DNA of 64,000 nt from Takakia lepidozioides (taxonomy: Eukaryota; Plantae; Bryophyta), in contig CM060733.1 in the NCBI GenBank assembly GCA_030704615.1, forward strand, positions 35,154,001-35,218,000. Reading direction: 5' to 3'. Made by a program: the position numbers and the translations under genes. The notes under the pieces were generated by a model, which saw only the letters and a program-made list of their open reading frames with translations, did no database searches and was not told the origin of the DNA. The stretch's first letter is position 1; the number at the start of each line of letters is the position of its first letter. Shown here piece by piece: positions 24,988 through 51,245 of the stretch.

Positions 24988-25487
24988 NNNNNNNNNNNNN
25001 NNNNNNNNNNNNNNNNNNNNNNNNNNNNNNNNNNNNNNNNNNNNNNNNNNNNNNNNNNNNNNNNNNNNNNNNNNNNNNNNNNNNNNNNNNNNNNNNNNNN
25101 NNNNNNNNNNNNNNNNNNNNNNNNNNNNNNNNNNNNNNNNNNNNNNNNNNNNNNNNNNNNNNNNNNNNNNNNNNNNNNNNNNNNNNNNNNNNNNNNNNNN
25201 NNNNNNNNNNNNNNNNNNNNNNNNNNNNNNNNNNNNNNNNNNNNNNNNNNNNNNNNNNNNNNNNNNNNNNNNNNNNNNNNNNNNNNNNNNNNNNNNNNNN
25301 NNNNNNNNNNNNNNNNNNNNNNNNNNNNNNNNNNNNNNNNNNNNNNNNNNNNNNNNNNNNNNNNNNNNNNNNNNNNNNNNNNNNNNNNNNNNNNNNNNNN
25401 NNNNNNNNNNNNNNNNNNNNNNNNNNNNNNNNNNNNNNNNNNNNNNNNNNNNNNNNNNNNNNNNNNNNNNNNNNNNNNNNNNNNNNN
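24988..25487. other. Scaffold gap (500 N)
   Basis: Run of exactly 500 N. Confidence 0.99.
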
Positions 25488-25769: not shown

Positions 25770-28290
25770 GCATTTTGATGCCAAACTGCCGAAATGAGAC
25801 GTGGTCTCTTGGACTGCAATAATTGCAGGATGTACTGAGCAAGGGCATGGTGAAGATGCATTTGAACTCTTTGGGCAATTGCCACAAGAAGTGTAGAGCC
25901 CGACAAGTTTCACTCTCATTGCATCCTCAAAAGGTGTGCCACAGCCCAGCAGCTTAGGGCAGGGCAAGGGGCTTCATGCCACATTGTCAACGCTGGATTT
26001 GAATCAGATGTTTATGTAGGAACTAGCCTTGTCCATATGTATTGCCAAGTGTGGGAGTTTTGGTGGATGCGCGAAGATATTGCATGTGCAAAGGTTTGAA
26101 GCCCAACCGCAACATTTTGTTTGTGTTTGCAATGCGTGTGCAAGCCTAGAGCTCTGGAAAGGGGAAAGAGGTCCATGGGTGACAACGTCAAAGCTGGATT
26201 TGTACCAGATGTCATCCTGAACACTGCCCTGGTGGACCATGTATGCCAAATGTGGGTGCATGAAGGATGCGAAGGGAGTTTTCAAATGGCTGAACAAAAT
26301 GTTATGTCGTGAACGCGATGCTTGCAGGGTATGCACACAGGGGCGTGGGATGGAGGCTTTGGAGACCTATGAGCAAATGATGGGGGAGGGGTGAAGCCCG
26401 ACCACATCACGTTGTTGCGTTTGTAATTCGTGTGCAAGCCTGGCACCCTGGTAAGGGCAAAGAGGTGCATGGTTGCATCGCCAAAGCTGGAACTGTACCA
26501 GGTGGTGATCCTGAACACTGCCTTGGTGGACATGTTGCCAAAATGTGGGAGCATTGAGGATGCAGAGGGAGTGTTCAACATATGGCTGAACGAGATTTGT
26601 TGTCGTGGAATGTGATGCTTGCAGGATCGATGCACGCAGGGCGTGGGATGGAGGACTTGGAGACCTATGGCAAAATGATGGGGGCAGGGGTGAAGCGCGA
26701 TCACATCACATTTTGTGTGCGTTTGCAGTGCTGTGCAAGCCTGGCAGCCCTGGAAAAGGGCAAAGAGGTGCATGGTTGCATTGCCAAAGCTAGAATTGTA
26801 AAGATGTGATTCTGAACAATCCCCTCGTGGACATGTATGCCAAATGTGGGAGCATTGAGGATGCGGAGGGAGTGTTTTCCAATATGGCTGAACGAGATTT
26901 GGGTGTCATGGAACGCCATGCTGTGCAGGGTATGCATAGCAGGGGCGCGGGATGGAGGCCTTGACCATACTATGAGCAAATGGTGGGGGAAGGGGTGAAA
27001 TGCAACCACATCACGTTGTGAGCGTTTGCAATGATGTGCAAGCCTGGCAAGCCCTGGAAAAGGGCAAAGAGGTCCATGATGGGGGAAGGGGGGAAGCCCG
27101 ACCACATCACGTTTGTGTGCATTTGTAATGCGTGTGCAAGGCACATTCATCTGTGTTTCAATGTTGGTGCCAGCATGGTGGCCCTGGAGAAGGCAAAGAA
27201 TCCATGCTGACATTATCAAACTGGAATTTCGTCATACCTTAATTGGAGACTCCCTTGTTAACATGCATATGCCACATATTGGAGTGTAAGGAGGCCTGTC
27301 TAGTGTTCAACAATATGGTGGCATGGATATACAAGCATGGTTGTGGTAGGAATGCCTTCGAGACATATGATCAACTGATACAGCAAGGGGTGATGCCCGA
27401 TCAGGTCACATTTGTTTTGCATTCTCAAGGCTGTGCGAACTGGCAGCCCTAGAAACGGCAAGAGGTCTATGCTGACATTGAAAGCTGGACTTGTACCAAT
27501 CTGATTTTGAACATAGCCTTGTTGACATGTATGCGAAATGCGGGAGCATGAAGGTTGCAAAGAGAGTTTTTGACACATGGCTGAACGGGATGTGGTGTCG
27601 TGGAATGCGATTCACAGGATATGCCCAACATGGTTGTGGGATGGAGGCTTTGGGGACCTATGAGCAAAGATGCGGAAGCATTCAACAGAATGCCTCAACA
27701 TCTTGATCACGTTGGAGTATAATTTGGCATGGGGGGATTTACTAAGCATGGTGTGGTAGGAATGCTTTTGAGACCTATGAGCAGTATTCGCGCAAAGGGT
27801 GAAGCCCAACCACATCAGATTTGTTTGTGTTTGCAATGCGTGTGCAAGCCTTGCAGCCTTGGAAAAGGGCAAAGAGATGCATGTTTGCATCGCCGAAGTT
27901 GGAATTGTACCAGATGTGATTCTGAACAATACCTCGTAACATGTATGCCAAATGTGGGAGCATCGATATGTGGAGGGAGTGTTCAACAATATGGGCTGAA
28001 CGAGATTTGGTGTCATGGAACGCCATGCTTTGTAGGATATGCATAGCAGGTGTGCGGGATGGAGGCATGGGGAAGGGGTGAAGCCCGACCACATCACGTT
28101 TGTATTGCGTTTTGCAATGCGTTGGCAAGCCTGGGCAGCCCTGGAAAAGGACAAAGAGGTTCATGGTGACATCATCAAAGCTGGATTGTACCAAATGTGA
28201 GTGCAATGAGGATGCAAGGGAGGATTGACAATATGGCTGAATGAAATGTGGGTGTCGTGGAATGCGATGATCGCGTATATGGTGTCTTGC
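25770..28290 (+). pseudogene. PLS-class pentatricopeptide repeat (PPR) gene, heavily frameshifted as assembled
   Basis: Recurring ~300-bp P-L-S units: NTALVDMYAKCGSIEDA.GVFN, ERD..SWN.M..G, E.LETYEQM...GVKPDHITF, CASLAALEKGKEVHG. No E/DYW domain recognised. Confidence 0.85.
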
Positions 28291-28986
28291 TTCATTCATT
28301 GATTTGTGTAGCCACTCAGACCATCCACCATTTCCTGATAGAGGGGTCCACCCGGCATAGGGAGGAAGTTACCCCAATTCCACTTGACTGAAGGGTGATT
28401 TTTGATTTTTGACTGATTCTGTGACAATGGAATGGAAATCAGAGTACTGTCCTAATTCTAGGTTTGGGTGGTGGAGCTTCACCAAAGCTTGAAGATGGAA
28501 GTGGATACGAATTTTAATGAGCTTGATGAGAGGGGCAGCCATGTGCACAAGTTTGTTCAGCATCTTAAATTTGGACATGTTTGTTTGTTTCTCGTGGTGT
28601 GGCTTTGGATGGAGCCCTTGATGACTTACATGAATATTGTCAAAAGCTACCCTTAACCCACCAAGATCCAATCCCCACTGTGGATGCTTGAAAGTTCATA
28701 TAGTGAATGTAAGGTTATTTGGGTCTGTTGATATTGATTGATGCGGCTTGTGAAAATTGAACATTGAAATGCCAGATCCGCCATTTTTTCTTCCAGGAAA
28801 ACACAAAACACGGGATCTCTTCATGTAACACAGTGGGCATGACCCACTCTTTTTTGTGAAAAATGAACGTAGTTTCTCAGATTTGTCGCTAGTAGTGCGG
28901 AGCAACACGAAGCCCTAGTATTAAAAGGATTGGATTGTGTGGAAGTGTTGAGGATTGTAGCTTGGTGTAGGATTTGGGCCGTGCTA

Positions 28987-29249
28987 ACCAAGGTGTAGCC
29001 CAGTGGTAATGGGCACATACCACCTCGGAAGTGGTTGTGGGTTCAACCCATCCTTGGTGTCACAAAGGTGTCCACCTTCCTAACGGAACGCACATACCCA
29101 CATCGGAAGTGGTTGTGGGTTCAACCCACCCTTGGAGTCACAAAGGTGTCCACCTTCCTAGCGGAATGCACATACCACACCTCGGAAGTGGTTGTGGTTC
29201 AACCCACCCTTGGTGTCACAAATTTGTCCACCTTCCTAGTGGAACGCAG
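28987..29249 (+). repeat. tRNA-like (Pol III A/B-box) head followed by ~3 tandem 77-78-bp units
   Basis: A-box TAGCCCAGTGG; B-box GGTTCAACCC in each unit; units start at 29013, 29090 and 29168. Confidence 0.7.
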
Positions 29250-29309
29250 TAACCCTTTGGGATGAAGATTAAATCAAGCCCTGATGAAAGATGTGCCATT
29301 AAGTTCTGC

Positions 29310-30372: not shown

Positions 30373-31003
30373 ATGCCTCGATCCCTTGCGGCCGGCGGGG
30401 ACAGCGCCAATAAATCTTCACACAATCGATGGAGGCCAAGTTCCTCGAAATTATGCAAGAGCCAAGTTCTCAAGTATCTGCATAGTGCAAAGCAGGGCTT
30501 TTTTTTTTCATTTTGGCTAAGAAGCGTAGATGGCTACAAAATTTGAAAGCTAAGTGCAAAGGTGGCGATGACATAGATGCTTAGCTAAAAATCAACTGGC
30601 TACAGGCTATTTCATTTGCATGCAATATGGCGATTTGAGCCCACTCACAATCTGAAATCTAAAATAATTAATCAAAGAAGTCCAAAGCCAGGTCGTGCTC
30701 CATGACGAGATCTCCACCGTTGATCGCGCATGGGGCGACAGCCGCTAGATGTAGGGCTGTGGGGAACGTGTATTTCTGGCGCAACACGCATATTCCCCTA
30801 GAGCTTCTGGCACCAGCCCGTGCGCGCGCCCCTATTTTCTGGCGCATTTTTTGTATTTTTTCCCAGGATTTTACATAGGGCTGTCGCAGCCCTTTGTTTT
30901 TTATCGCTTCTAGGCTCCATTTCGCCTAAAAAAAGAAGCGCTGGTGCAAAGCGACGATTGCCAAGACTTAGACCAACCGTGGCGCACCAAGGGGTTCAAA
31001 CCC

Positions 31004-31010
31004 TATAAAT
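31004..31010 (+). promoter_or_regulatory. Putative TATA box of the HAD-terpene cyclase gene
   Basis: TATAAAT about 80 bp upstream of ATG 31085, enclosed by a 9-bp inverted repeat GGGTTCAAA/TTTGAACCC. Confidence 0.4.
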
Positions 31011-31084
31011 TTTGAACCCGGTTTGAGATACTACTCAGCAGGAGGTCGGACCCATTCGATTGCACGCCGTGGCCTCCTTGAAGC

Positions 31085-32679
31085 ATGGGCAGTCTGAATA
31101 CCGAGCTTTTCCCCCATTTCTCAGCTGCAAGCAACAGTCCATTCAAAAGTGTATGCTTCGACATCGGCGGAGTTCTGCTGGTGCCCAACTTAGACAACAG
31201 TCCACGGCACGCCTCTGCACCCCGTTCGATTCAAGCGTATACTGCGCAGCCATTTTGGTTCCAATATATTGAGGGCAAGCTGGTCCTGGGCGGAAACCTT
31301 GCACGGTGTGTCCTCGACAACGGTTTCAATGCAGAAGATGTTCAAAACATTCGTCGACAGAGCGAGAGCTCTCTCCGTCCTGTTGTGCAAATTCTCCAAC
31401 TGGTAGATGCTCTAGCTTCTACGGGCAAGCTCAAATCTCTTCTGCATGACTAATGCTCTAGAGAAAGACTACGACTACCTCCTCGCGAGATGCCCAGATC
31501 TTTTCCAGAAGTTTGATAGAGTGTTCTATTCCGCTGCCGTTGGATTCGCAAACCAACTTCGGTTATTTCCAGCACGTTTTGCACGAGACGGGTTGCAAAG
31601 CATCAAGAAACATTTTCATCGACGACACACTACAGAATGTGGTTGCTGTGAGTCCTTGGGCTTCACTTTGTGTTCTTGTCGGATCGGAAGACGTCAAGGT
31701 GACGGTCAACCTTGTATTGTACCATCTTCGCACTGATGAAGAGAAGCTGTTAGCCGCTGCTGATTAATTTGTTGCGGAGGAGAGGATCAGTTGATAGATG
31801 TCCCCTCTCTTACGTCCGATGGCCTTCGAGTCCCACTTCCACTTCGACCACTTTGTGATGGCGGATCTTGCTAGAGGACCCAGACTTCCTTCCCATGCAT
31901 ACAGCTCCAGCAACCGTGACGTTTAACTTTTTCCCTCCAGAGGAAAGGCTGGTCCAAAGAGATGTTAAGACCAACGCGAAACGCGCGGCCACCCACAAAG
32001 CTTTCCCCAGATGATCTCGACACAACCGCAGTGGCGCTAGTTGCCTTGTACAAGTTCTCGAAAGTAGATTTTGAAACAAATCAACGCCGTATTGGACAAG
32101 ATGCTAGATATGAGGACCGAGGATGGCATTTTCCAGGCGTAACTTCGACCCCTCGCGTCCAAGGATAGATGCGGTCAGTCAGGCCAGCATCTTGTTATCT
32201 ATTTCACCTAGCAGGCCGACCCGCACCTGTGAAGAAGACCGAACAGTTTCTGTACAACTTGCTCAAGATCAGAGCATATTTGCGGGGGAGTAATACTATC
32301 CCCTGCCAGAGACTTTTGTGTCAGCTTGCTGGCCTTGCTCACCAGTTCAAGGAGCACTTCCAAAAGACAGGCTTTCTGGAACTACTGGGCAGCGGGTGAG
32401 CGAGCATGTTGGAATGCAAGGGGGCGCTCTTGCCCTGGCAATGAGACTGATAGCTTGCGAGTTGTGCGGCATCGGGAACACCAGCGATCGGAAGCAGCTG
32501 GCACGGTTGCAGAACGTGGGATGGTTCATGGATGTCTGTCCCTTCTATTCCTACAACGAGACCCCAAAAGCTGGTTCGGGAACGAGATCACGACAACTGC
32601 ATATGCCCTGGCTGCGCTCCGCAGTGGATATCACAACCCTAATTTGGGTGTTAAGACTGCATGCAATGGGACGTATTAA
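31085..32679 (+). CDS. HAD-like hydrolase / class II terpene cyclase fusion (AstC/DrtB/AncC-type drimenol or albicanol synthase-like), intronless; frameshifted as assembled
   Basis: HAD motif I FDIGGVLL; FDRVFYSAAVG; motif IV IFIDDTLQNV. Cyclase half: TFNFF, PDDLDTTAVAL (32010-32027), YLFHLAGR, RAYLRGS, ALALAMRLIAC, QW-like LARLQN-DGSW, WFGNEITTTAYALAAL, stop at 32679. Motifs are collinear across shifting frames with no intron. Confidence 0.85.
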
Positions 32680-35270
32680 CGGTAGACTCCTCGAGTTCTC
32701 GAGTTCATTCTCTTCGGATAGATTTGAGTTCCCAAATACACATATGAGGGTTGAATTCTTGGACGTGGTACTGCAACTAGTGGTTGGTTTGGAGTAGTAT
32801 TTTCATACGCAACTCATACGTTATTGTAGTATTGGGTATGTAGTACTTAGTAACAATTTTCATTTGTGAATCAATACCTAGACATGCAGAGAATACGCAA
32901 GGGTTTCTCCCCACTTATAAATTTTACAAGTTACGGACCAGCTTTCAAGGGACCAATGTTGCTGGATGATTGTGTCTAGATGGAATACTTATATTTTGGT
33001 GTTGGATGAATATATGTGCTTGTTACTGTTTGCTGCTTTTATTGTCAAGTTAAGAGAAAAAGTATGGGCAGTGGGTCATAGTAGTTACCGAAACAACATA
33101 TGGGCATTTCATAGAATGAGTGACATGTGGGTAGCAATACAGATTAATCTCTACTTTCTTTGCATGAAAATAAACAATGGAAGACTGACTGAGGATTCAA
33201 GGCTATAGTCTCAATTTGTATGGGATAGATTGATCCCAAATTGACAGGATTACAATTATATGATAGACACTATATTTGGAATAGCAACCTTAAAATAGCA
33301 ACCTTACTCTGAGATGATAAAGGGCAGGGCTAAGCATGTACCATGCATTGTTAAAAATGTCACAATTATCAAAGACACCTTGTCATATGGTCAGTGCCAC
33401 CCTTACTGTGACGAGCTCTCATGAGAGGCTGGTACCCAATCCGACTTGAAGCTGGATGTGCAGTGTGCATTCATCACCTCCATTTAAGCAATTGTACGCA
33501 TTCAACATCCCTTGATGTAGCCTTGCCGAGTAGCTACAGCACGAGAGAGGGGCACAAAAAGGAAACGAACCATACAAGAGTAGTCATCGTGCATGATGTG
33601 TCAACAACCATCTTCGCATCTGCACTGTGCAATTGAGTGCACGCACCCCACTTCCAAAAACACAAGAACATGTAATCAAATTAGCTGAACTTAAATGAAC
33701 TGGGAAGTTAAAACGTTCCTGTGACAGCAGCTCTTTTGAATAGTCTTCTTGAACTCTCCACATTCTTGCTTCTAAAAAATAAACTCGGAAGGCCTATACG
33801 CTCCTATACACTGCTTTTCATTACATCACAGGGGGCCGGAACTTATCTATAGGTCGATAATACGATGTTATGTCTGCTTCCCAAGTGGTTGAACCAAACT
33901 AGCTGGACATCCAATTCTTTCCGCATAATACAAGAAATCACCTAATGTTCTCGCTTTCTATATCCGAAAACCTCACGATTGATGTTTTTCTTGTGTCTTG
34001 CTTTCTATCTTCTTTGTTTGAAGTTGAAGCTGCTCTCTTTTGCAAAGCTCTGCCTTCATATTCATCATATCTTCATAGCAATCAGGTTTGAAACCCTTGC
34101 AGGCAGCCATTGGTATTGTACAGCTTCCTGCAATCTACCTTGACTGATCCTATTGGACTGGCTGTTGCTCCACATTCACGCCTTCCCTCTGCACAACATC
34201 CCTAAGAAGCAGAAGCTGAATATCAGAGAATCCCCATGAAGGCCGTGCCTTGGAGGTTGTTACACCATTCAAACCAACCACCGTCCCCCTATCTTTCTCA
34301 TTGGAAAATTAATAATTAAGACATACTTATCATTCAGTTAAAATCTTTGTTAAACTTGATCTCTGGGAAGTGGCCAGATTAATTAACCCCCAGGCTCTGT
34401 TTCCCTTTATTTAAAAAATAAAATTGACGATTTTCGCCAGGTGCTGATCCAAAGAGGTCCAATTTCATGAGGACACCTGTAACCCTCTTCTCTTTCTGAT
34501 TGAGGTGGTCCCGGGCCTCAGGAAATATCATTGTGAGGCAATTTTGCTTGGTCAAAAGCTCATTTTTCCTTCAAGATTTGCTTGGAGTTTTCAATCCACC
34601 ATGGTAATTTATTATAATCTCCCCCAAACGTGAGGTCCATTTCTTCCCACTTGCATGTAGTTAGGTAGCTTGCAGTTGGTAAGGTTCATTTTCTGGATGA
34701 ACTCCTGCTAGCAGATACGTCTGATCCATGAGGGTGGGGTCCATTTTTAAGGTGGCCCAACCAAAAACACTCCCGGCGCTTTAGGGGTTTAATATTTTTA
34801 ATACCCAGGCAGGGTTCCTCGCATATGCAAGATCTGACAGCCCGCTTTCTGAGCACTTAGGTGAGCCTCCTTTGTGGCTTTGGAGTTCCTCAGCTCGCTA
34901 TAGTTTCTGGTATGTCACACATAGACATTCAATTTTATTAGTTCAAGTGCACAGCCTGAGACGCGAAGCTGCAGGCATGAAGTTTTTGAGTAGATTCTAA
35001 TAGAGAGCTCAGTGGGTAGGTATCACGTTCTCACATAGATTTCATCTTAGCACAAGTCCAATCCATTTCTCAACATGACAGAACCGTGATAGAGACCCAA
35101 CTCCAAAATTTCAAAGAGCTGTTCGCTTGATTTACAAAATTGACTCTGCAATTAAAAGAACTGGTTCACACAAGTACCAGTCCGAGCTCCATTGGCACCT
35201 AACAGTAGGGATGACAAACTGGTTGGGATCGACAGACCGTGGCAAGTGTATACGGGAACAGTGATCAGAC

Positions 35271-38200
35271 ATGGGCAAACGTTGGGTTCACTCTTTGCGC
35301 TATTTTGGGACTCTGGTGTTTTGGCTGGTCTTCTGGATTATTCCTTCGCAATCAGAGAAAATCGGCTCAAAGGCCGGCCCCCACTTCCACCGGGTCGATT
35401 GGGGCTTCCCAGTCATTGGGGAGACACTTAGCTACCTCTCAGCGATGCGCATCTACAGACCCCAAGATTTCTTTCAGCACTGCCAATGAAGCCACTAGAT
35501 CATGCAGCTAGTTTAGATGCTTGACTAGACATACATGAACTCGAATGATGAAGGTCTTGTTGTATGCGGCTGAGCTATGTCTGAGAAACCGTGTACGGCA
35601 TGTTCTGCCACGAGCACTGATTCTGAGATTCGTGGTGCCCAATATTTTTTGCCAATTCTTTGGATCCACTTATCGATCATCCACGTAGTATGAGTGAGAT
35701 ACGGTGCTGAAACAATAGGTCAATTTCGAAGTCTCAACGTATATTTCAAGAGCTGTGATATGAGATTCTGCCAAATGATCTCATGGTTTCATCCGGTCGC
35801 AGGCTCGGGAGAAGAAATATGGAGTGGTGTTCAAAACCTCGCTAATGGGTGACAAGACTGTGTGCTTGCCCGCGCCTGCTGGAAACAAGTTCGTGTTTGC
35901 GAATGAGAACAAACTGGTTCGAAATTGCTGGGCACAGCTCATTTTCCATCCTTCTTGGGAAAGAAAGCTATACCTTGGGGACGCCCGACTCTTACAGGTA
36001 AATAATACTCTCTTTAATTGCTTTGAAATGGACAAACTTGTGAAGTGTTCAGAATAATAGCCCTGGACGTGCCTCAATGGCTCCAAAAGGGGGTTAATTT
36101 CACTCTCAATGGCCAGTGCCAGTGGCTTGGGTGTACTTGGAAAAAACAAATAGCCTGGAACACCTGCCAAAGCAAGTGAACGATTGCTTAAGAACTTCCT
36201 TGGAACTGTTACCTATTTCAACAGTGTTCATTATCTCGAATTTGCACATGTCTTGTACACACCACATGGCGGCGTGTGGTATGATGATCACTGCTCTACT
36301 TAGACAAGTTAGACTGGCATGCAGGAAGTCAACAACTTCATACACAACAGGCTGTGCTCGACCTTGCCAATATTGCGAGACAATATGACCCACAATAAGA
36401 ATTCCTGAAAGTTAGACTCACAGGTGATCGCAATGCTGCTACTTTGAACTAATCTCAACTGTGGGGATATTGCACAGACGCAACCGCCGCATCATCATTA
36501 CTTCCTCACTCCCTGAATCGATCCAGAGCTTTGTGTCCAAGAATGGAGGTATTTGCAGCTGCCCACATATCCACATTTGGGAGAATAAAGACCAAGTGAC
36601 AGGATCTGAGTGCATTAAACGATTTTGCATTTGTTTCGGCATGCGATCTCTTCTTGAGCTTAAAGGAGGCCCTGAACTCAACAATCTTTTGGATGCATTC
36701 ATTACTTTTTGGTGGATGGCCTTATGGACTTTCCCTTTGTTCCCGGGCACTCGTTTTCTTTTCTGGAAAGCTAAACGCGCTCGTAAGATCCTCCTCAGTG
36801 CCTGAGCGCCATCATGACAAGAAGGCGCCAGGTAACAAGAGAACCTCAAGTGGAATCCACATATAATTTCCCGCTTGCTACATATTGCAACTCAACCTCA
36901 TTAGTTGGATGACCGATTTATATGAGATCTTGGCAACACATGGCAGTCAGGGGTGAATTTAGACTTCCGAAGATTAACTTAGTTGCTGAAGACCCTGCTG
37001 GATATTTATTACCTTGGTTCTTTCAAGAGATCAGTGATTGTTCTTGAAAGTATTGTTATCACCATGGATGATCTGTACCGGGCAGGAACTCGAAGACAAA
37101 CTTGCATCGCCACCTCAAGACCTTCTGTCAGTGCTCCTGACGACGCCGGACGAGAATGGACAGTTCCTTCACCGAGACTGCCATCCTAGACAAACTCGTC
37201 GTCCTCATGTTTGCTGGCCCACGAGACCACTGCCGCCTCCTTTCCTTGACGTTTGCGCCTCTTGGCTGATAATCCGACCTGCTTGAACGAGGTTTGAAAG
37301 GTAGCCTTCATCTCATGCCACATTGTCCCAAGTACCTTTCCTATGAATCATTGATATTAGTAAGAGGTAAAGCTGCCCGAGGACTTTCCTGGATTTTCGA
37401 ACCCCTGCCCTCGGACAGGCGCCTCAAATCAGGAAAGTCCAAGGCGAGGGCTTTACCTCTTACGTAAAAAACGAAGTTGCCCGTTTTCGATACTGCCCGT
37501 TTCTCCTCTCGGCGTTGCACCAGGGTTTCATCGTCACGTACTACAACAATCGCTGCCCAAGTTTGAAAATCGTCTGCCCTATATTAAGAATAATAATCCA
37601 TAAAATATGGGGGACGATTCCATAATCTGAGATTACAGCCCCGTCCCGGGGCAAAACCTGTAATCACGTGCCAGGGAAAATTCCTGTCAGGGAAGCCCTA
37701 ATTTTAACAAAGCCAAAAATCTGAAGGCTTTTACGACAAGCAAATTGATTAGAAAGATGAGAAGTATACTGAAAAAGCTCACCTCCAACTATAGAATCTT
37801 GACGCTTTCGATGGTGCTTACAGGCTGAGCTCAGTCTCAATACAGAATCATGAAGTCTCTAGTATACAGCGAACTCTCATAATATAAGCTTAGTTAAGAA
37901 AGAAGTGAAACAAGTTACTCTAGCTATCATCATCATCTCTCTTCACTTTCTACTCGGCTTACGACTTGCTTCAGCAGGAGTTGACCTTCGTCTTCTCTTT
38001 CTCTGAAGTCAGTTCTGCCTTGAGTAAGCATCTGCAGTATGGATTGATAACTCCAACCAGGCTAAGTCTGTAGAATCCATGCAAGTGGGGTGCTTAAGGA
38101 GTGCATGTCAGCATGTTCCAAAACAGCTAATGTGGCTGTTTCGGGTGAGTTTGGCATCCCTCCCCTCCCTTAAGCATTCAAGGTCAGATGGTGGGGTCAG

Positions 38201-39744
38201 CTGCAACGTATGACTAATATCAGATACCCTAAGTTAATCGACTTTATATCTTGGAAGCAGGATCATGGGCCTGTCAAACAGGCTAAGTCCTGGCGGAAGA
38301 GGGTACAAGAGATTCTCAAGAATCTGAATCTTAAGTCCGCAAGTCCTGACCCGCTGCATAAAATCTGACTTAGAGGCTGTATGTCCAAAGCCATCTGTTG
38401 CTACCTCAAGGGTTTACCCACTCTCTCATACAGCCTACCTTTAAACAGCAAACAGATGCAGAGAGGAAGGGGATTGCAAGTGCCTGTGGTGTGGGCAACC
38501 TGAAGACAAAATTCATTTTCTGATTCATTGTCCTTGGTACTCACCAGAGAGACGCCCTCTTCTAATCCATCAAGGGATTTGTGCCTGTACCTCTGTTTAC
38601 CAACTTTGAAAATCTCAAGGCTGACCCAAAGCTCTGGCCCTTTTGGGGCCTAGTTATTGGGCAAATCGTACACAGCAGATCGATGCTTGTGTAAAGGGAT
38701 TTTTAGAGGATCTCTGGAAAACTCGGATCAATTGTCTGTTCCAAGGTAAGTCATACTATCAGCATCAGCCCCTGACAAAGGTAGTTTCTGTCTCTTTGTG
38801 TTCCGCTCAAACTGGGCGCTGGGTCAATGACCACAAGGGTACGGGAAACAACGTCTTATGAGTACATTCTTTCCAGTAGAACTGCTTACTGATTAAATGT
38901 ATGAATTTCCAGAGCTAAGACAGATTGAGGCAGCGAGGGAACCTGGAGGCAGTACTGAACTGGACAGACACAAGGCAGATGAAGTACACATGGCGCGTTA
39001 TCCAAGAAAGTATGCGCACAGTACCAGTGGTGCCACTCCTCTTTCGGGAGGCTATTACCGATTTTGAGTTCGATGGCTTTACAATTCCCAAGGGTGGAAG
39101 GTACATCCCGCTCAGATCCACCCACTAGCATCTAATTCCCAATATTGGGCTCCAATGGTCCAAGCACTCTTTTGTCATGGGCTTCATCGATCAAAACCAC
39201 TTAACCTTATCAGTTCAAGTGTCAATAACTCGTCCAACACAATCAGCACTGTCGGATATCACAGTAACTCGCATGATTATGCTCCTCACGCTTTCTGAGG
39301 ACTAGGCCCAAAATAGCTCATAGATTTACAATCCTCGATTGAGGAAAGCTCATTTCTGATGCGAGAGATCTTAACATCAGTTTGTTGTGTTTAGCAGGTG
39401 ATGTTTTCATCACATCGCTCCAACATGGCCCGGAGTACTTTCCTGAACCACGCAACTTTGACCCCTCCCGATTCGAAGGTACGGGACCTCCTCAGTACAC
39501 GTTTATACCCTTTGGAGGAGGTATACACAGCTGCCCTGGCTATGAGTTGGCGCGGTTGGCGATGTTGGTGTTTGTGGATCAACTGGTTAGACGCTTACAA
39601 TGGTCACTTGTCGACCCCAATGAGGAAATCACCGCCACCCCTCTTCCCACGTCTGAAAAGGGGCTGCTCTTGAGATTGCAAAGAGATGCCTGTAGCGCAG
39701 AGGACCTTGACTGCAGAGGACCTTGCTTGTGGCTCCTTCCATAA
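35271..39744 (+). CDS. Cytochrome P450, CYP85 clan (CYP716-like N-terminus), six exons; frameshifted as assembled
   Basis: Approximate exons: 35271-35485 (PPLPPG..GFPVIGETL), 35803-35997 (KYGVVFKTSL...AGNKFVFANENKLV), 36470-36831, 37086-37300 (QDLLSVLL; FAG-HETT I-helix), 38912-39100 (ESMR; PKGWK), 39398-39744 (FDPSRF; PFGGGIHSCPG heme motif). Confidence 0.9.
37360..37463. mobile_element. MITE-like fold-back element in P450 intron 4
   Basis: Terminal inverted repeats GTAAGAGGTAAAGC...GGACTTTCCTG / CAGGAAAGTCC...GCTTTACCTCTTAC, about 37-bp arms; possible TA target duplication. Confidence 0.55.
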
Positions 39745-40435
39745 TCCCAAGTTTACTAGGACGATCAAACAAATTACCGCCACATCATGCAATAGTTAGT
39801 ACTAAGTTCCTTCTGGATCTAGTAATTTTGCCACTTGCGCAATGTCTGGGGTGTCCATGTAGAAAGTGCTATGCAGTTTTCTGTGAGGGAAAGACTGACA
39901 TTATCCATATTAAGCATGTGCTGTTCAAGCAAAATGGGCTCCTGTAAGTAGCAAGGTCCAGGGTGATAGAATTTTTCAACAATATGGCTCAATGAAATAT
40001 GGTGTCATGGAAGGCGATGATCGAGAGTCTTTCGAGATCTATGAGCAAATGGTCATAACTTGTCACGGTCTGCATAATAATAGCTCATGTTCTTGGCACA
40101 TTTTGTACATTCATGTGTTGAAGAGTGTCACAGGTCACAATCTACTAGAGAGATACAAAGATTTCTTGGGCAGGAAGTTTCAGAGTAGAGCCTCTTAGCA
40201 CCACTGACTGCTAATGAATGAGAGTCTGCTACTGACTGCATGAGAGTCATACACTCATGAGAGAATGCCACATGCTAGCATTCTCTCAGTGCTCTCATGA
40301 TTCTACACAACGACGTGCTATGTCTGTGCGTGCTACTGCATTTACAAGATGCTCTCGACATATCCCAGCTGCGAGATACACGCCTTTTTCTACGATATGG
40401 TAGTAAGTGATTAGTAACTAAAGACGAGCTGCAAT

Positions 40436-42134
40436 TCAAATACGTATTGCCTCTATAAACTTCTCCATAGCTCTCGGAGGGAGTCCGATCAGCACTTTCA
40501 AATTTTCTTTTCCCCCTCACTTCCATCTGGCAATGTAAAGTAAACTGCCTCAGGCGCAGGCCTCGAGTGAGAGGTCCATTGTAAAATGGCTTTCCCCACC
40601 CAAGGTCAAGCTCATAGTACGGCAATCGGGACCAGTCCGAAATTGCAAATGAGTAATTGACCGAAGTTGGCCTCTTCTTTACGTCCCTCCATGTAATCAA
40701 GTACGGATCTCAAGTATTTGTCTGTGATCAAGCAATCCCTTCTTGTATAAGGCCCACTGCATAAGACAGAGGCTTGGATAGGAGCTCATCAGCTGTGGTC
40801 ATAGCGCAAGCTGCATAAGATGAGTTACCAACATAGTCGGACGGAACGGGCGGAGAAACTTTGAACGAACGTCAAACTGCCACGAGGAGTCTGGTTTCTT
40901 GGGATGGCTCCATTCCAGTGCTTTCGTGCGCGCGCGCCAAACATGGGCTGCGAGCGTCTCAAAAGTGGAGCACTTGCTCACATATCCCCCAGGCTGTCCC
41001 AATATTTGTTGTCTTAACTCTGTGAGGGTTTCGGGTGAAATGGAAAGTGTTGTATACAAAATCATCACCCAAGACATTTTCTGCCAGATCCATCTCGTCA
41101 TATTCATGGTGTGGAAAGTCAATCTGACGTGGAGTTTCGTGGGCGAAAGATTGTACGGTCTAAGAATGGAGCACTCAGGGGTACTGTCTCCACGCACTAT
41201 AGCAGCCCAAGCATGTAGGAACTGTATGAATGCGATGCCGTCCATAAACGCATGGTTAAGGCCACGCCGAATGCGAACCCACCACACCTGAACCTTGTCG
41301 CCTGCTAGCACGGAGGGGGGGATTCAACAAAAACTTAGCTGTTTCTGATTCAAGTTGAGGACTCAGACATGCAGTAGTGAGCATGTCCGACATACAATAT
41401 TGTGACATATTATATGAATCTAAAAGACTAGTTCGGTCGCCGTCTATTTACTGAGCAAATCAGTGCCAATTGGACTCATTAAGAGTGCAGGCATTTGAGG
41501 AAGATGCGTTCACATCCTAATCTAGTATGCGTTAATCAAATTTCCTCTATTCTGGAAAGTTTTAAAAAATACTTACAGTGTTGCAGGAAGTTTTAATAAT
41601 CGGGCACTACATGCGATGCATATATGGCAACCATGAAACAAAATTTTGACATCAGCTATGAGTTACCTGAATAACCAACGCAGGGGTCACAAGTTGCTGA
41701 TGCAATGCGTCCTGATTCTTTGCCTCTGGAACAAAGAAGACCAGTTGCATCAATCTCGGATCGGGCTTGCCAGGCTCGGTGCATTTTTCCAAGTCAGATA
41801 TGTCGGCATCTGCCTCAGCTTCCACAAACACGACCCTTTGTGCCATTACAGCAGTTGAGTCGAGTTCCCCCTCCAACTGACTGAAGCCTTCCTGCTAGAT
41901 GGTAATACGGGACAAGTACCTTCGAAAGTGCCTCTCTCATCGCTTTTGCTAACATTGTCATGGTTTACGGTAGGATTGGCATGATACAATGAAACAGCGT
42001 TCATTGTAAAAAAGCAGGGGCTGATCCATGTTGGAAAGATACATCACATGATTTCTAGTAGGAACAGCTGGTACAACCAAAGTTGGGTGGTCTTTCAAGA
42101 TCACTTGGAGCTTGGGCTCAGCTACGATGTCCAT
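40436..42134 (-). CDS. BAHD acyltransferase, left-arm copy; frameshifted as assembled
   Basis: Reverse complement of the intact 61368-63064 copy apart from mostly single-base indels; NHAFMDG and DLGWG present; one intron. Confidence 0.85.
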
Positions 42135-42621
42135 GCTTTCCTGAAGTTTTTTTCGTCCAGAATGGAAGCGAGAACTTCAAATCTGGATGTCCAAGATGTT
42201 TCGGAAGCTGAGAGCATTCAAAAACCCCAAAACGGAATTACAGGTGAGATACTTCGGACCTTCCTCGTTCCTGACCTAGTTGCACATCTCGGACTTGAGC
42301 TACAGCTGTACAACTTTCAGCCCTCTGCCTATCCTCGATATCGTTCTTGCTTGTGACTGTTGGCCAGAAGCATTCAAGCTACAACGCCCCTGAAAACATG
42401 ATGAACTGCTAAGCAGTGCTGGTCTTCGCCGGCACCTCTTCTATAGGCTCCAATAAAGTTGATGGGATTTGGAGGAGCCTCTGAATTTTGTGGGCCCTCG
42501 TCGTAATGAGGTTGGTCTGGAAGTGGGACCCGCCAATGGTAAGCGCCTATTCACTTGCCAAACTTTGCCCTATACCCTACACGCAGGGCCTTGTCCCTTA
42601 GGGGCCTTACCCCTAAAGGAC

Positions 42622-43736
42622 GAGCCTGCTTTTTGTGGGCCCTGTCCAAAACCAGACATACCCTCATGGGTGAGGGTATAAGCTTATCTCTCATTTGAAC
42701 ACATCCCACCGTACCAAAGTGATCCTACCTACTTCATGCACCTCATGTAAAAATCTCAGGAGATTTGACCGTCAATTAGGAAGATTATTAGCTAGGCCAA
42801 ATTTCCTACCATTTTTCTTTACCATTTACCGTTTCATAGTGAGTTTGTTTTTTAAGAAATGAAGGGAAAACCTGGGAGTGACAGCTCACAAATCAGGCCC
42901 CTAATACTGAGAGGAGAAAATAACCTCTTTCATAGTAACCTCGCAGTGAAGGCTTTCTCTGATGGGACACTGCCCAAGGGAAGGGGAGGAGAGCATACCG
43001 CACCCCTCATGTAGCAGGATTTGACCCGAGAAACATCTGGTGTCACTCGGTGCGCACTAACCAACTGAGCTACTGACCGTTAGTGGAAAATTGGTTTGAC
43101 CAAGCACATGGCTTACCATTTAGAATTTGCTCTGATACAGGCTGTACCCAGATTCTATTGTATGGCAACCTACAGCATGTCCACCCAAATCTAGAGCAAA
43201 ATGCCAAAATTCAAAATGGTTGCTTTGTATGGGAAACAAGGGGTAAAAATGGCCATTTCTCCCCAAATCACCCTAAACGTGTCCCAATTTTGAGGAAACA
43301 AAACTCCTCTTCATGCTCTTGCTTGCCTTTTTTTCTTTTTTTTTGACGATAAAGGGGAACGGACTTGCCTTATACTCACTACCCTGAAAGAAATGAAACA
43401 TCCTAAGCTATTTACAGGCAGAGATTGCAAAAGAAAGGATTTCCTACTTGAATCCAAACTCAGCCGACTATCGGCTCAGATAATCGCGGCAAGGAAAAGG
43501 GGCCACGCCATCTAAAGCGATGAACTGTTTTTGTGTGAGCCCGTTAATTTTGTGGGCCCCTGCTGACAAACCCTTCGCCCGCAAATGCCGAGACTCAGCC
43601 CCATTTGCCTGCCACGTGGTAAAGTCAACCCTGCTGGAGGGCCCCAACCATCAAAATTTTGGGTGTCCGTGCGCAGTCCAAAAATTTCTGACGGCAGTCC
43701 TTTAGGTTTTTTAGGGTGCCATCAACGCAAGGGGTG
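42622..43736 (-). repeat. Dispersed repeat copy B with SINE at 42842-43080
   Basis: Same sequence as 1-1094 with indels; TAGTG duplication at 42837-42841 and 43081-43085. Confidence 0.8.
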
Positions 43737-43789
43737 AACTCTCTTTTGCCTGAAATGCAAAGCCATTCTCAAAACACTCCTGACCTTGG

Positions 43790-46700
43790 ATAATTTAGTG
43801 CGCATAAGTAGTAACACACTGCTTCGAGTAAGGAAATGACAGGTCTGAATCGCTTAGACAATCCAAGGTATCATCGAGTTGGACGTTGGGGTCTGCTGGA
43901 GCGGTAACAGGTGTGCAGTGGTCAAACCCAAAGCATGGAGAATTTTCTTGACATAGATGGATTGGTCAATCCAAAAAGCTTATGCGCAAGATCTCGTATG
44001 ATGATGTGGAGACCAACATACACGTCTGCAACAGATGTAGAGACTTCAAATTCTTTTTCCATGTGCGAGATCATACATGTCAGTTTGTCCGTGTGAATGC
44101 AACCCAAGGCCGTTGTCAACAAAGATGGTCGTGAAGAGAAGAGGCAGCAGCCGACTAGAGTATACGCAAGGATCCGCATCAGTAGGGTGCAGATCTTACT
44201 GTGTGGGAAATTGTGAACTTTCTGATTCTAAACCCTGGAAGATTGTTGAGCCCGTAAAGACTCTCGCGTAAACGGCAACCTTCCCTGCTTCATCCCCAGG
44301 GGTTGCAAAGCCTTAGGCTGTAGCATGTAGATTTCCTCCTCCAAGTGCCCGTACAAAAATGTTGTCTTTATATCGAATTGGACAATGTCTATATCTTGCT
44401 GGGCAGCAATGAGAGCACAGTCCTGATCGGCTCATATTTAAAACTGGGGAAAACATTTGATCGTAGTCCACGCCATATTGTTGGTTGTAGCCTTTGGCCA
44501 CGAGTCGACCTCGTATTTTGCAATGGCCCTTGTAGATGTTGTCTTTATTTTGTATATCCACTTACACGAAAATGGCCTTGCGGCCAGGAGGTAAGTGTGT
44601 CAAGACCCGGTTTCGTATTAAGGACTGGAATTCTTGCCTTTTTGCCATTCAGCAGAAATCAGGACAGCTCAGAAAATGTGACAGGCTCTTCTGGCAAGCT
44701 GTTTGGTTTCTACACGCCTGCAAAGGAGCTCACGTAGTAATCTTTAAAGCCTCTCAGGTGGTCCCGAAGTCGTTGGGTCGTCCATGGGGCTGCTGATTAG
44801 CCAATTGATCACCATCACTGTTGGGAGCTTTGGTTGGCCAAGTTAAGCTCTTGAACCACAACTTCTTCTTCGGCAGAGTCTCAAGTGGTTCGGCTGCAGT
44901 GGCCGGAGCGGACTCATCAATAGCCGCTGGTTTGATGATCTTCATGCTGACTTCGTAGAATAGTCCTGATGCTTCATCGAGGCGATTGGCAGCGTCATGG
45001 GTTAATGAGAACTCGTCAAAAAAGACGTCGCGGCATATCATAATTCGATGTTTCTTGGCATCCCAGAGACGATAGGCCTTAGAGTGGGAGAAACACCCAA
45101 CAAAAATGGTCCTAAGGCTCTTAGAATCTAGTTTCTTTATGAGCTCTTTGGGGATGTGTGCATAGGCAATGCTCCCGAACACAGGTAAATGACCCACAGT
45201 GGGGTGTATGGCCTACCATAATACGTAGGGTGTCACTCTCCGTTGTGAACTCGGACCTGAACGGTTGAGTACGTAGGCTGCCGTTTAAGCCGCCTCCCCC
45301 CAAAATTGCAACTTAATCTCTTGGCATGTAGCATGCTGCGAATAGACTCGACCAGGGTTCTAGTCCTCTCACTCTGCAGATTCCGTTTCTGCTCGGGGTA
45401 TGTGGGTGGTGGTCTCATGGCGAATCCCGGCGTATCTGGTGAACTCGGTGCTCAAATACTCGCCTCCCCTGTCACTACATAGCTTTGAAATCCGTTCCGA
45501 GTCTCTCTCTCAAAGTTGTCGCTTCAAGCTGCTTGAAGGCGTCGAAGACCTTTGATTTATTAGGGATGCATACACAAAACGGTATCCACTAAAATCATCC
45601 TTAAAAATAGCAAAGTATATTACGGATGCAATACACAAAACGGTATCCACTAAAATCATCCTTAAAAAGAGCAAAAGTATCATGCCCCTCCAAATGAGTT
45701 GACACTCATTGGCCCCAAACATCACTGTGGAAGAATTCGCCAGCTTTTTTGTGCGCGGAGTGCCGATGAACGGACTGGGAATGGCTACTTCTGGTCTTTC
45801 CGAAGGCACAACCTTCGCACAGACCAGGCTCACAGTCCTTGGTTGCAAGCTGCAGACCTATAACCACGTCGTTCTTCACCATCTGAATATCATGTTGTTG
45901 TTGTTGACATGCCAAAACGCTCGTGCCACACACCGAGCTTTTGGTAGTAGGCATTTTCCCATTGGGAGTCAAATCTGGATTGGTGAGGGCAACATTGGCC
46001 TTGCTTGTGGGCTTCACCGCCCTAAGCTACATCCATACAGTTTGTCAGATTGAATGTCAGTCAACACAACTTGCCTCGTCCTTCTTGGCTAGTGAGGAAA
46101 CATTCCCTCGCCTGTAGGTGGTCACAAATCCTTTATCAGCAGCAATTTTCATCAACCAGGCATCGGATTACAATGTTGCCGACACCGCAGACCCAAAGCT
46201 TCCTGTTATCGGGCAATCATAACTGGCCACTTATCGGGACAAATCTCCTCAGAGTGTCAACCACTCGAGATTATCTGTCATATGCTCCGTGGCACCACCA
46301 TCCGCATACCAAATACTGGCAACTTGCTGCTGCTAGATTCGTTGGTGATTGTGACAAGGCAGCGTTGTTGGATTCTTCAGAGGCGATGATTTTCGCTTCA
46401 CTCCTAGATTTCTCATCTTGTTTCTTCTTTTTCACATTCCCTTTCCCAGTGACCTTTGCAATGACAATAATTGCATCTGGTCCTCTTCTTAAAGCTCAGC
46501 TATTCGTTGGGCACGCTTAATTCCCTCCTCAGCTGTGGCACTTTCTGCATGCTGCTGCTGCTGCTTGGGGCGGCTAGAGAAAAAATGCTTTGTCACTTCT
46601 TCCTCGATACATCAGTACACGATTGCGACCTTCCTCCTTCAGCAATCGAAGGGTGAGGATTTTGAGGGTCTGCTGATCGGCGGGGACGCTGTCCCATCAG

Positions 46701-47764
46701 AGACCAAATACCTATAACTTTGTGGCAAGTGCCTATGATCTTGGTCATGACGGCTTGATCTGAAATGGGCTCTCCGAGATCATTGAGCTGTTCGTCGCCA
46801 TGACCTCAATGGTGCTGATGCTGTCGGCAATGTTTATCATCGGATTTCATGCGGAAATCGAAGAACTTCTGCTCGAGCAACGGCAGTTTTCGGCGTTTTG
46901 CTCATGCACGGTGCAAAGCGTCACCACATCTGTTGGGAGGACCTGCACATCATCAATTGCCGCAAAAACTTAGTATCCTTAGAAGAACAAATGAAGGATT
47001 GACAAATATATCTTTATCAGTCCACTCATCTTCATTCGCTGCATCCTCTCTGATGGCAATCCCTCAATTATATCAAGTAGCTTCTTGGCACGAAGCATGA
47101 CACTCATCTCGATTTCCACATGCCGAAGTTGTCTCCGGTGACCCACGGCCCTCATGGATCATTCCTCCTGGCGGGCATTTTTGGCTGAGATCGAGATCAA
47201 TTTTAAACTACTGCAGAGAGAAGATAACGCAGAGTAATGTGCTAGTGGAAGTCAGAAGAAAAGAATGGTGTCACAATAGTTACAAGCCTATCTATGGAAG
47301 CTACATGGGTTGTGGGCCCATAACCTATAGAAAATACTAACTAGGGTGGTTAGGGACAGACTTGCCCAGACACGGAATGCCACAAGAACACGAGTAGTGT
47401 TGCTGTAGATTCAGATCACAGTCATGAACTACATAAGCTAGCCTCAGATTCAGATCACAGAGTGAAGTAGGGAAGCTAGCCTCACACTTTGCACACACGA
47501 GATGAACGTTAATGCAAATGGAGAGACATATACCTAGCCTTCCATACCTTAGCATGGGTTAAGGCAGGAACACATGAACATGCTTGGCTATGAGTAAAGT
47601 TAACACATAGTAGGCCATATGTTATGAGTGGGCAAACTTGTAGGCGGCAGATCAAAAAGTGGATTGTGGCATTTTCTAAGCCATAGGTATATTTGAGTCT
47701 CTATGTGAACAAGGCCATGCAGAGTGCCAACTAGTCTGCAGGTGCTGTTTCTAGATTTTCTACA
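43790..47764 (-). mobile_element. Ty1/Copia element copy B (indel-rich)
   Basis: Direct copy of 1140-5148; LTR 47326-47764; PBS 47313-47325. Confidence 0.9.
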
Positions 47765-50700
47765 TGTTGTCTCCAGAGGATGGTGGAGAAAGATAGAGAA
47801 GTCGATACTGGTGGTGAAGTACGCGGTCCGCCTCCTGACATTATTCTCTTCTTGGCTGCAGAGCACAAAAACATGCATACACCGATAAACGCTTTCTCCG
47901 GTGGACAAGAAAACAGCTGACAAACAGAATTTGGCCAGAGCTAAGATGATGAGAATCTTTAATTAATGGTTCAGTGTCGCAACAAATGGTGAACCTTGCA
48001 ACATTTCTGTTCATGAACACAAGCTCCAGTTTGTTCCCAACTGGAAATGTGACCCCCTTGAAAATTTCCAATTGTTTTTGCAAAAATCTGAAATAGCAAG
48101 CAAGGGCCTTTATGTTCAGTGAACTAGGAACAGTAAACGTTCTACAAAAAGCAAGAAAAGGATACGTATCAGTAAAAACAGCTCTGGCAAACATTTCACA
48201 CAGCCGACACCGAGATCCATGGTTTTAAGAGGAAGTTTAATGGAACCAACTGCCAGTGTGCTTGTTGAGAAATGTTAACAGCTTGGTGTCACATTTATAA
48301 CAGAAAAGCAGTAAAATTATACTCAGACCTCCGCTGTAAGCTCAAATCAGATTGAAGACTATCATTTCTAGACTCGTGCTGGACCTGATTCAGCCTGCAA
48401 ACATTCCAAGCCTTCCTTGACTCTTCTTTGTTCTCAGCAATTCTCAGCATTTTCCTGCCACAATCACAAAGGCAGATATCAACTCCAGGTTCGGACCACA
48501 AAGGTGTAAAGTTTGACAAAACCAGTTAACTTCTGCAGCCAATTGCTTAAAGTTGATAGAAGAGAGATTGAGAAGCAAGATCTTGAGATGACTTACTCTC
48601 CACAAGCCTATAGAGCACTACAAAACATGGAAACTTTTGTCAGCATAAGGACGGAAAATCTATGCACATTTTCCACATGGCATCATCCACATGCAGATTT
48701 AACAAATGCACTCCAGACTTCTCTCATCATCCTCAACGAACTGCTCAATTATTAGGTACTCATAGGAAGACATTTTGCCATAGCTCAATTATAGAGACTC
48801 CCAAACCAAGTCTTTCTTGGGTGCGGAAAAAGGCACTCTTGAGTATGAACAATGATACTGAGAAGTGCAATGCATTAGAATGTAATGAATCCCATTAACA
48901 ACACCGGTTCTTTGACATGGTTTGCAAAAGTTTCAAATCACATCGCCTCTCTGCCATAAACACAGCTGCAGTAGCACAACTATTCAGGTTGTGGATGGAC
49001 CCACTGTTCATTAACTTAACTTCAGCATTGCAAAGTATTTCATGTCACTTCTATTGGAATGAGGGAATTCCTTGTCAGGTGACTAGTATAACAAGGAATG
49101 GCCCAAACCGCTCGGAGTGCCAAGTACTCTTCATCCATTCCTTTGGTTAATCCAGAGATATCTTTGTTGTTAGTGTCCAGCACCAATTCCACGCTGTTGT
49201 GGGCTCTAATTCCATCGTCAACTGCAAAAGATGCACATTGTCACTGTTAACAGACATCAGACGGCTGCTGACATTGAAAAGCAACTGAATAGCAATAGTT
49301 GCTCTCCCATCCTATATTTTCCATAGTTGTATAGAGACTCTGAATTGAGTATACTTCATGGCTTGTAATAGCAAGAAGTAGCCTAGCAGTTCACTCAAAT
49401 AAGCCAAGGGGCATCCACATTCAGTGCCCAACAGGGCAAACCATAGAATGGAGACTTCTGCACACGTTTATAAGAATCCAAATTACCTTGGCACTTATGC
49501 ATGGTTAGGGCCCATGCCGCTTCAATGGAACCTGAAACAATGCATATTTTTTTCCAGCAAAGCATGATCCAACCATACATCTGTGACGACAAGCAGGTCA
49601 GGGAGAAACTCAGTTGCGGTATAGCTGTCAGGTGCCTAGATCCTGATATAGCATATTGACTTTCCAATTTGGTATATTGTGGACAAATTAGTGATCTTCC
49701 GGATCTGTAGTAGAGCCACTATGTGCCGGTTTCACAATCAATCAACCTTCCACACCCAACAAGAAAAGGATCATTGGCATTCTGTACACCTGAAGCCTTT
49801 TGCAATCATCGACATTCAAACAGGGTATTGAACGCTTCTGGGACACAGTCAACCCCCCGCCCTTTTTTGAACTTCACAGTTGGAACCTCCTGAATGTCAC
49901 TTATCTGCAAGATTTTCATATCCCCGCTTCAGTCTCCACTCTTCTGGTTTTTGGTTTGGATGGGGAGGTTGGGACACACACTCCTTTTCTAGACTTCCAC
50001 CTCCCCACAACACACCAAGCGAGCCGTTTACCAGCATCATATCTCTGCTTCCACCAAGCTCCAGGTTTCGCAACAGCATCACCTGCAACACATCGGAGTC
50101 TTTAATTACGGCGTTAAGAGTTCCAAGATCTCTCTGGATGACTTCACATTGGTTTCTTCTTCCTGGTAAGAACTCTCGAGTCTCTGTCTTGACTATGAAG
50201 ATCCTCATTGAACAGAATAATATATTCACTGCAACTGATATTGTAACGTGCTGGTACATGTAGTTCAGTCTCAAGGAATCTTGACAAAAGCAATGTTGTG
50301 GTACTAACAAGCTCTGTACGTCAATTTTCTTGATATTATCTGACTTTCCACATTGAGCCCATTAGAGCCCTTGATGTACTACTCATGACAGACAAATTAA
50401 CATCCACACAGATTCTCACACCTGCGCCAACTTTTAAGAGCTGATTTCTGAAGCGGCCAGGCAGGGTTGACCAAACACATTTTCTTTCACTTTGTTGAAG
50501 CTGAGATTAATGTTCTTCCTGTTCATTTCTCCTCCATGTTCTTCTTTGCACTGTTCCTCTCCCTGTCCTGATTACATCCGTGTGAAGGAATAACACCCTC
50601 TCTTTCGGGTAGCTTTTACTCACTTGCCTTCAGGTTATCCACCTCCTTGTTCCTGCCAAGCCAAATTACCACCTCAATCTGGTTAGTGCTGGACAATAAA

Positions 50701-51245
50701 CTTTTCATTATCTTACTCCAGGATCTTTTGAGAGAGCATATCAAATTTCCTGAAGGAGCTAGAAATATAATTCCTGTTTGCTTTCTCAAAACCCAGGACT
50801 AAAGTCGAACTAAGTCCCTCTGGGTCAGATGCAATTGTTGATTGTAAGCTAAACCCTGCAAACACTCAAGTGATCAGCAATCCCACTCTGCGGAACCCAG
50901 ACGCATCTCTACTCGAGATAAGCAATTTTGGCAGGACCCCCTCATTTTGATTCAAGTGTGGTCTCGAGGCACGCCCGCCTCACAATTTCTTCTTCCAGTG
51001 CTTCTGAATTTCCCCTGTTTACTGATATCATTCAATCCGGACACACTCTATGTCACCACCCGCAACTTGATTTGAAACCCCCCATGTAACTGTAAATCTC
51101 CAATTCGTGGCAGAGATTCCCACACTTTTGTGAGAAAGAAAGATAGGCAAAAAAGATTCATTCATACTATGCCTCACCAAATCAGGTTGAATTTTTTTTT
51201 GATGGTGTAGAGTGAGAAAGACAGTTTTCAAACATGACACCTCCA
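47765..51245 (-). pseudogene. PIF1: PIF1 locus 3' portion, copy B (indel-rich, truncated at the fold-back)
   Basis: Direct copy of ~5149-8646. Confidence 0.75.

Follow-up and report, generated by a model that had tools for sequence, protein, structure and literature searches.

In the literature searched, HAD-type class II terpene cyclases (HAD-TC) are known solely from fungal and bacterial sources, and the drimanes of plants are attributed to class I synthases. The HAD-TC-beta enzymes (PF28380) AstC, AacA, DrtB, AncC and AsDMS have an N-terminal HAD-like part and a C-terminal class II part with the DxDT motif. The definition and mutagenesis of this motif, and the roles of the DxDT pair and of the HAD domain, have been reported (PMC13244436). 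In AacA and AsDMS the HAD domain removes phosphate, whereas that of AstC, with Glu in place of the first metal-binding Asp, is inactive (PMC13244436). The plant drimenol synthases PhDS and VoTPS3 are canonical class I sesquiterpene synthases (PMC13244436). In the present work, a 64,000-nt stretch of the bryophyte Takakia lepidozioides (contig CM060733.1; referred to as the window) was analysed, in which an earlier note had proposed a cluster at 31085-42134 of a HAD-like class II terpene cyclase, a CYP85-clan cytochrome P450 (P450) and a BAHD acyltransferase. The predicted cyclase matches the HAD-TC-beta enzymes in its C-terminal part and DxDT motif, and may share their N-terminal HAD-like part as well. 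Drimane alcohols would be the product class it has in common with PhDS and VoTPS3, which are unrelated to it in sequence and mechanism.

The three enzyme types are also found together in drimane ester clusters of fungi (PMC8596746). In the astellolide (ast) cluster and the drt cluster of Aspergillus calidoustus, for example, a HAD-like drimane cyclase is accompanied by P450 oxidation and acyl transfer, as in the layout found here. The plant locus differs in its tailoring genes, which belong to plant families (an intron-bearing, putative CYP85-clan P450 and a hydroxycinnamoyl-type BAHD), and also in having neither a polyketide synthase nor a separate phosphatase gene in its 11 kb. Full-text searches of one literature collection found no paper on a HAD-type terpene cyclase, or on a cluster containing one, in a plant. 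The linked three-gene cluster underlying the locus is real and uncommon for a plant; the copy of it at 31085-42134 is full of errors.

An inverted repeat with arms of unequal accuracy

Six-frame reading and profile searches recovered three gene-like sequences at 31085-42134, on the strands and in the order proposed earlier (Table 1). The gene families and the three-gene layout had been assigned correctly; at least three non-homologous biosynthetic genes are physically adjacent, and the same order and orientation recur in a mirror copy, as far as it is visible, together with an intact BAHD gene. The gap between the stop codons of the P450 and the BAHD gene, given earlier as about 690 bp, measures about 650-740 bp depending on the copy. 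The view of 31085-42134 as an independent or intact cluster is not supported. This stretch is an indel-riddled duplicate (indel: insertion or deletion) of the copy that starts at about 61.4 kb, and usable gene copies could not be confirmed in it: the cyclase, the P450 and the BAHD gene are each frame-broken many times.

When the window was compared with itself, 39506-51245 aligned collinearly and without interruption to 52209-64000 in reverse complement; these parts are called arm A and arm B, and the gene copies are named after them. Arm B is the well-supported version. A 964-nt stretch (51246-52209) is present once at the centre of the hairpin. Both arms share one contig starting at 25488, because the scaffold gap lies at 24988-25487. 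Arm A probably extends to the left to at least 31085, and perhaps to the start of the contig. A third copy of the spacer, at 1-9592, is nearly identical to arm B, with 8 substitutions and 30 indels. The spacer carries a copia-like element with gag and integrase-type open reading frames (ORFs) at 2027-4285, which is mirrored at 56562-58814 and has a broken copy at 44754-46520. These ORFs provide an internal control of sequence quality: they are intact and identical in the third copy and arm B, and broken in arm A.

Over 11.7 kb, arms A and B differ by 296 indel events, 256 of them of 1 nt and none above 5 nt, and by 68 substitutions (9 transitions and 59 transversions); the ratio of indel events to substitutions is about 4:1, and there is no structural difference. 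There are 15 differences per kb at 39.5 kb, and their density climbs toward the junction at 51245/51246, beside which it reaches 96 per kb. In the three-copy comparison, arm A was the odd one out in 394 of the 440 variable columns, and its private differences were about ten times those of arm B. About 60% of the indel events of arm A against either of the other copies lie in a homopolymer context. Arm A is about 96% accurate, which is near the level of raw reads, and its errors are mostly 1-nt indels with a bias to deletions. Natural decay, by comparison, is rich in substitutions and transitions and includes occasional larger indels. The divergence of arm A is not of the substitution-dominated, transition-rich and read-supported kind that marks an evolved copy.

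Public sequence data were compared with the locus. The clean stretch 60900-64000 is represented in seven public runs, all from one organism, and four of these were compared with 30900-36899. These four come from three samples: X1 (2017), X6 (2021), and X2 and X5, which share one sample (2023). X1 and X6 behave as RNA; X2 and X5 are DNA. All runs are stored as Logan contigs, and therefore show presence rather than depth or absence. The contigs of the four runs disagree with the flagged copy every 25-40 nt. Every listed DNA contig of at least 200 nt (X2 and X5) is gapped against the window; one of 1146 nt, for instance, has 27 gaps and departs from it in 13 letters. Letter differences are listed at 40 sites, and at 33 of these all covering contigs carry a letter other than that of the window. 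The RNA contigs of two studies agree with the DNA contigs. The states private to arm A were absent from the contigs of the four runs (three samples).

The error-type spectrum of the differences and the disagreement with the public contigs make it very likely that the frame shifts in the flagged copy are assembly errors and not the marks of pseudogenes. The frameshifts against which the earlier note had cautioned do not occur in the public contigs compared with this stretch, and they mark poor sequence. An intact BAHD gene in arm B and transcripts of the cyclase and the P450 were found.

The flagged 11 kb is probably a low-accuracy duplicate of a real three-gene locus, with arm A as a fold-back or unpolished artefact. 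The most likely source of arm A is a single fold-back (strand-switching) long read, or very few of them, that overhung the end of the contig and went uncorrected. Uncorrected reads of this kind would account both for the indel frequency, about one per 40 nt, and for the worsening of quality toward 51245/51246. The artefact is favoured because the quality of the arms is very unequal and accuracy decays toward the turning point. Fold-back chimeras and unpolished contig ends of long-read assemblies are generally known to give a similar hairpin, with one clean arm and one of about raw accuracy; the present locus differs from them by the 964-nt loop present once at its centre. This single-copy loop, which is unlike a perfect fold-back read, is one of several points that weigh against an artefact. 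Contigs can also drop minority variants, and so do not prove that arm A is physically missing. Moreover, at a few sites, including 32111, 32331 and 36667, both states occur and some contigs agree with the window, which suggests that several near-identical real copies, or strain differences, may exist.

The same loop, being asymmetric and leaving no perfect fold-back, would fit a real palindrome with two copies of the cluster, in which arm A was simply left unpolished, perhaps owing to reads that multi-map between the arms; in that case the genes of both copies would be intact and the dosage of the cluster would be doubled. Palindromic duplications do occur in real genomes, the assembly contains a third copy of the spacer (1-9592), several different DNA contigs fall on the same places, and a few sites show both states. 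Such a palindrome, however, predicts equal read support and similar consensus quality for its arms, whereas arm A has about ten times the private differences of arm B and degrades toward the junction like a single read, and no listed contig of at least 200 nt matches it without gaps. A real palindrome is accordingly considered rather unlikely. Far less probable still is that arm A represents an older real duplicate whose three genes have decayed to pseudogenes with genuine frame shifts. In favour of decay, all three genes are broken, and among the three copies of the spacer that of arm A diverges most; but indels outnumber substitutions about 4:1, only 9 of the 68 substitutions are transitions, no indel exceeds 5 nt, the BAHD coding sequence shows 3 substitutions against about 20 indel events, and the private states of arm A are missing from the contigs of the four runs. 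Evolved pseudogenes were rejected on this mutation spectrum, which is indel-dominated, poor in transitions and free of large indels.

Gene models and transcripts

Judged by its motifs and matches, a complete HAD-TC coding sequence appears to be present in cyclase copy A, shattered by frame shifts. The DxDT acid/base motif is read as DDLDTT at 32010-32027, the motif-I Asp of the HAD part (FDIGG) is at 31160-31162, and FIDD, which contains the DD of motif IV, is at 31615-31626. The piece 32318-32797 matches residues 404-462 of AstC in the PDB (E=0.013), a low similarity from one readable piece. An exhaustive HMMER search with the piece 32294-32794 returned nine proteins, the best of which were P0065 (E=2.4e-14) and the full-length, 535-aa P0069 (E=3.3e-4); both are recorded with the AstC-like_C domain (PF28380). 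In a tblastn search, residues 22-525 of the 535 of P0069 tiled 31142-32637 across three reading frames. Within this, residues 22-179 of P0069 aligned to 31142-31615 (E=2.6e-5); the broken pieces gave no Pfam HAD match. A single ORF of about 500-540 aa is not found in copy A, where at least three frames are needed. Pfam scans of the cyclase pieces gave no match with a library that lacked the PF28380 model; the scans are therefore uninformative, and the true members P0065 and P0069 were also blank. The pieces bearing DxDTT had no PDB match on their own, being too short.

The first HAD Asp and the DD of motif IV are both readable, so phosphatase activity of the cyclase is possible from its sequence; the plant enzyme keeps this Asp (FDIGG), whereas AstC has Glu13. 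The gene also differs from the AstC/AsDMS family in its setting, a nuclear contig with copia and gypsy elements and intron-bearing plant neighbour genes. Contamination was rejected as the source of the cyclase, because retroelements of plant type and plant genes with introns lie on its contig. The Logan sequence L001 (SRR2148099) has a cyclase with HAD and AstC-like_C parts at 255-1792, with about 70-74% DNA identity to copy A. The cyclase of L001 is followed by PPR genes (3561-4485), with no P450 or BAHD gene within 3 kb. This homologue places the cyclase family in at least one further plant-like data set.

The P450 and BAHD database searches were made exon by exon. Pfam p450 (PF00067) matches on the + strand were found at 38925-39128 and 39382-39744, with E=4e-12 and 1e-17, and these two matches correspond approximately to the last exons of copy A. 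The RNA-supported exon ends further upstream are 35474, 35800-35993 and 36474-36832, and another exon follows near 37070. In copy A, frame breaks affect the start codon and several exons, and the C-terminus is frame-shifted relative to copy B, the frame of which stays open to a typical P450 C-terminus. For this putative CYP85-clan enzyme, the best solved relatives of the last exon, the only exon searched in this way, are CYP725A4 (taxadiene 5-alpha-hydroxylase), CYP120 and CYP90B1. The heme motif FGGGIHSCPG starts at 39511 in copy A, with the heme-binding Cys at 39532-39534. It contains His (39526-39528, mirrored near 63980) within the pattern FxxGxRxCxG, where most P450s have Arg. Because both arms share this His, it is not an assembly error.

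Four Pfam Transferase (PF02458) pieces of BAHD copy A run on the minus strand from 42134 down to 40275. Exon 1 starts at 42134 and ends near 41667; exon 2 lies between about 41303 and 40390. Compared base by base, the coding sequences of copies A and B differ by about 20 indel events and 3 substitutions in 1.3 kb. Copy B consists of exon 1 (61368-61829), a GT-AG intron (61830-62191) and exon 2 (62192-63064), and has the HXXXD and DFGWG motifs of the family in the forms HAFMD and DLGWG. The closest database relatives are omega-hydroxypalmitate O-feruloyl transferase-like proteins (41-46% identity), and the best solved relatives are hydroxycinnamoyl-CoA transferases. By these similarities the enzyme is assigned to the hydroxycinnamoyl-CoA transferase type, in agreement with the earlier note's proposal of hydroxycinnamate esters. 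Albicanyl hydroxycinnamate-type esters occur in liverworts.

The cyclase and the P450 are transcribed, the former unspliced and the latter spliced. The first record of X1, a continuous RNA contig of 1978 nt, maps to 31045-33036 with no splice, and its comparison with the window gives 50 gaps and 21 differing letters; since this one contig covers the cyclase, the gene is intronless. The P450 contigs of X1 and X6 skip from 35474 to 35800 and from 35993 to 36474 (GT..AG), and continue past 36832 to the exon near 37070. Two short RNA pieces of low depth fall at 33100-33499, and in the cyclase-P450 gap no RNA contig was found from about 33500 to 34800 except a partial fragment at 34085-34124. Of the words of the BAHD stretch, fractions of 0.79 and 0.67 are present in the two RNA-like runs. 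As to the co-expression for which the earlier note had asked, cyclase and P450 contigs occur in both RNA-like runs, which provide neither a condition series nor a quantitative measure. Among the DNA contigs listed on 30900-36899, no single one bridges the cyclase and the P450.

At 32111, 31969, 36509 and 36671 the RNA contigs (2017 and 2021) differ from the window letter. The DNA contigs (2023) carry the window letter at 32111 and 36671, and there is no DNA contig coverage at 31969 and 36509. These may be differences between strains or between real copies.

Table 1. Positions of the gene copies, repeat arms and related features in the window
Feature	Position	Strand	Description
HAD-like class II terpene cyclase, copy A	31085-32679	+	AstC/AsDMS type, intronless; motifs, AstC match, tblastn, RNA contig
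Putative CYP85-clan P450, copy A	35190-39744 (ends approximate)	+	Multi-exon; Pfam p450, spliced RNA contigs
BAHD acyltransferase, copy A	40390-42134	-	Convergent; Pfam Transferase, comparison with copy B
BAHD acyltransferase, copy B	61368-63064	+	Intact; 444-aa model with HAFMD and DLGWG motifs
P450, copy B, 3' end	63807-64000	-	Last exon, cut by the window end; open frame with FGGGIHSCPG
Left arm (A)	39506-51245		Error-rich; part comparable in the window; mirrors 64000-52209
Right arm (B)	52209-64000		Cleaner; runs off the window end; intact copia ORFs and BAHD
Arm junction	51245-51246		Arm A (at 8647 in coordinates of the third spacer copy) adjoins the start of arm B (at 9592)
Third spacer copy	1-9592		With copia-like element; direct to 42658-51245, inverted to 60839-51246
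Scaffold gap	24988-25487		500 N; the contig with arms A and B starts at 25488

Other repeats of the window

In 14647-22419, inspection of the translations by eye revealed a retroelement of the Ty3/gypsy type, the gag and pol ORFs of which are long and open and include a 690-aa ORF of reverse transcriptase-RNaseH-integrase type at 20347-22419. An integrase-like ORF, also recognized by eye, is on the opposite strand at 14647-15420. A perfect tandem duplication of 415 nt (22670-23084 and 23083-23497, 100% identity) adjoins a 1.5-kb repeat family that is also found at 5343-6829, 47955-49421 and 54026-55504 (90-94%). The stretches 26088-28299 and 29031-29265 contain degenerate direct repeats (26088-26500 and 27792-28193, 76% identity) and a short tandem array with repeated peptide-like ORFs (VVGSTHPW.HKGVHLP...), and may also be low-accuracy sequence.

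Proposed pathway and its meaning

In the pathway proposed here, the HAD-TC-beta cyclase would protonate farnesyl diphosphate via the Asp pair of the DxDT motif and form a bicyclic (di)phosphate of the drimane or albicane type. The primary alcohol might be released by the HAD domain of the cyclase itself or by another phosphatase. The putative CYP85-clan P450 would then oxidise the scaffold, and the BAHD of the hydroxycinnamoyl-transferase type would esterify a hydroxyl group, plausibly with a hydroxycinnamoyl group. The products would probably be hydroxycinnamoyl or other acyl esters of an oxidised drimane or albicane alcohol. Liverwort sources of drimenol are given in a review of this compound, among the references of which is a synthesis of albicanyl 3,4-dihydroxycinnamate (PMC11397239).

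The three genes could also be real neighbours that form no pathway: the cyclase, whether lineage-specific or acquired horizontally, would then happen to lie next to a P450 and a BAHD that act on unrelated substrates. Both of these families have many members in plants, which makes adjacency by chance common, and L001, the sole relative with genomic context, has PPR genes beside its cyclase and not a P450 or a BAHD. Against this, RNA contigs of the cyclase and the P450 occur together in both RNA-like runs, which also hold most of the BAHD words, and the fungal drimane ester clusters show the same combination of enzymes (PMC8596746). Adjacency of this kind is a possibility to be kept in mind, though a somewhat doubtful one. 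It is distinctly unlikely that two things hold together: that the expressed and linked HAD cyclase, putative CYP85-clan P450 and hydroxycinnamoyl-type BAHD make acylated drimane or albicane sesquiterpenoids, and that the palindromic duplication is genuine, with arm A as a real second copy beneath its errors.

The flagged locus should enter no tally as a second or a pseudogene cluster, nor be taken to show that the cluster was duplicated. About 26 kb of the contig (25488-51245) may be an artefact, and gene counts, dating of duplications and selection tests that use this sequence would be wrong. The flagged copy adds nothing independent to the evidence for the real cluster, and the biology is worth pursuing on the clean copy. 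If the proposed pathway is true, this would be the first plant gene cluster built on the HAD class II cyclase family, and a case of convergence on the fungal design. Moreover, an expressed plant HAD cyclase beside a P450 and a BAHD would provide a testable route to the drimane and albicane esters of bryophytes.

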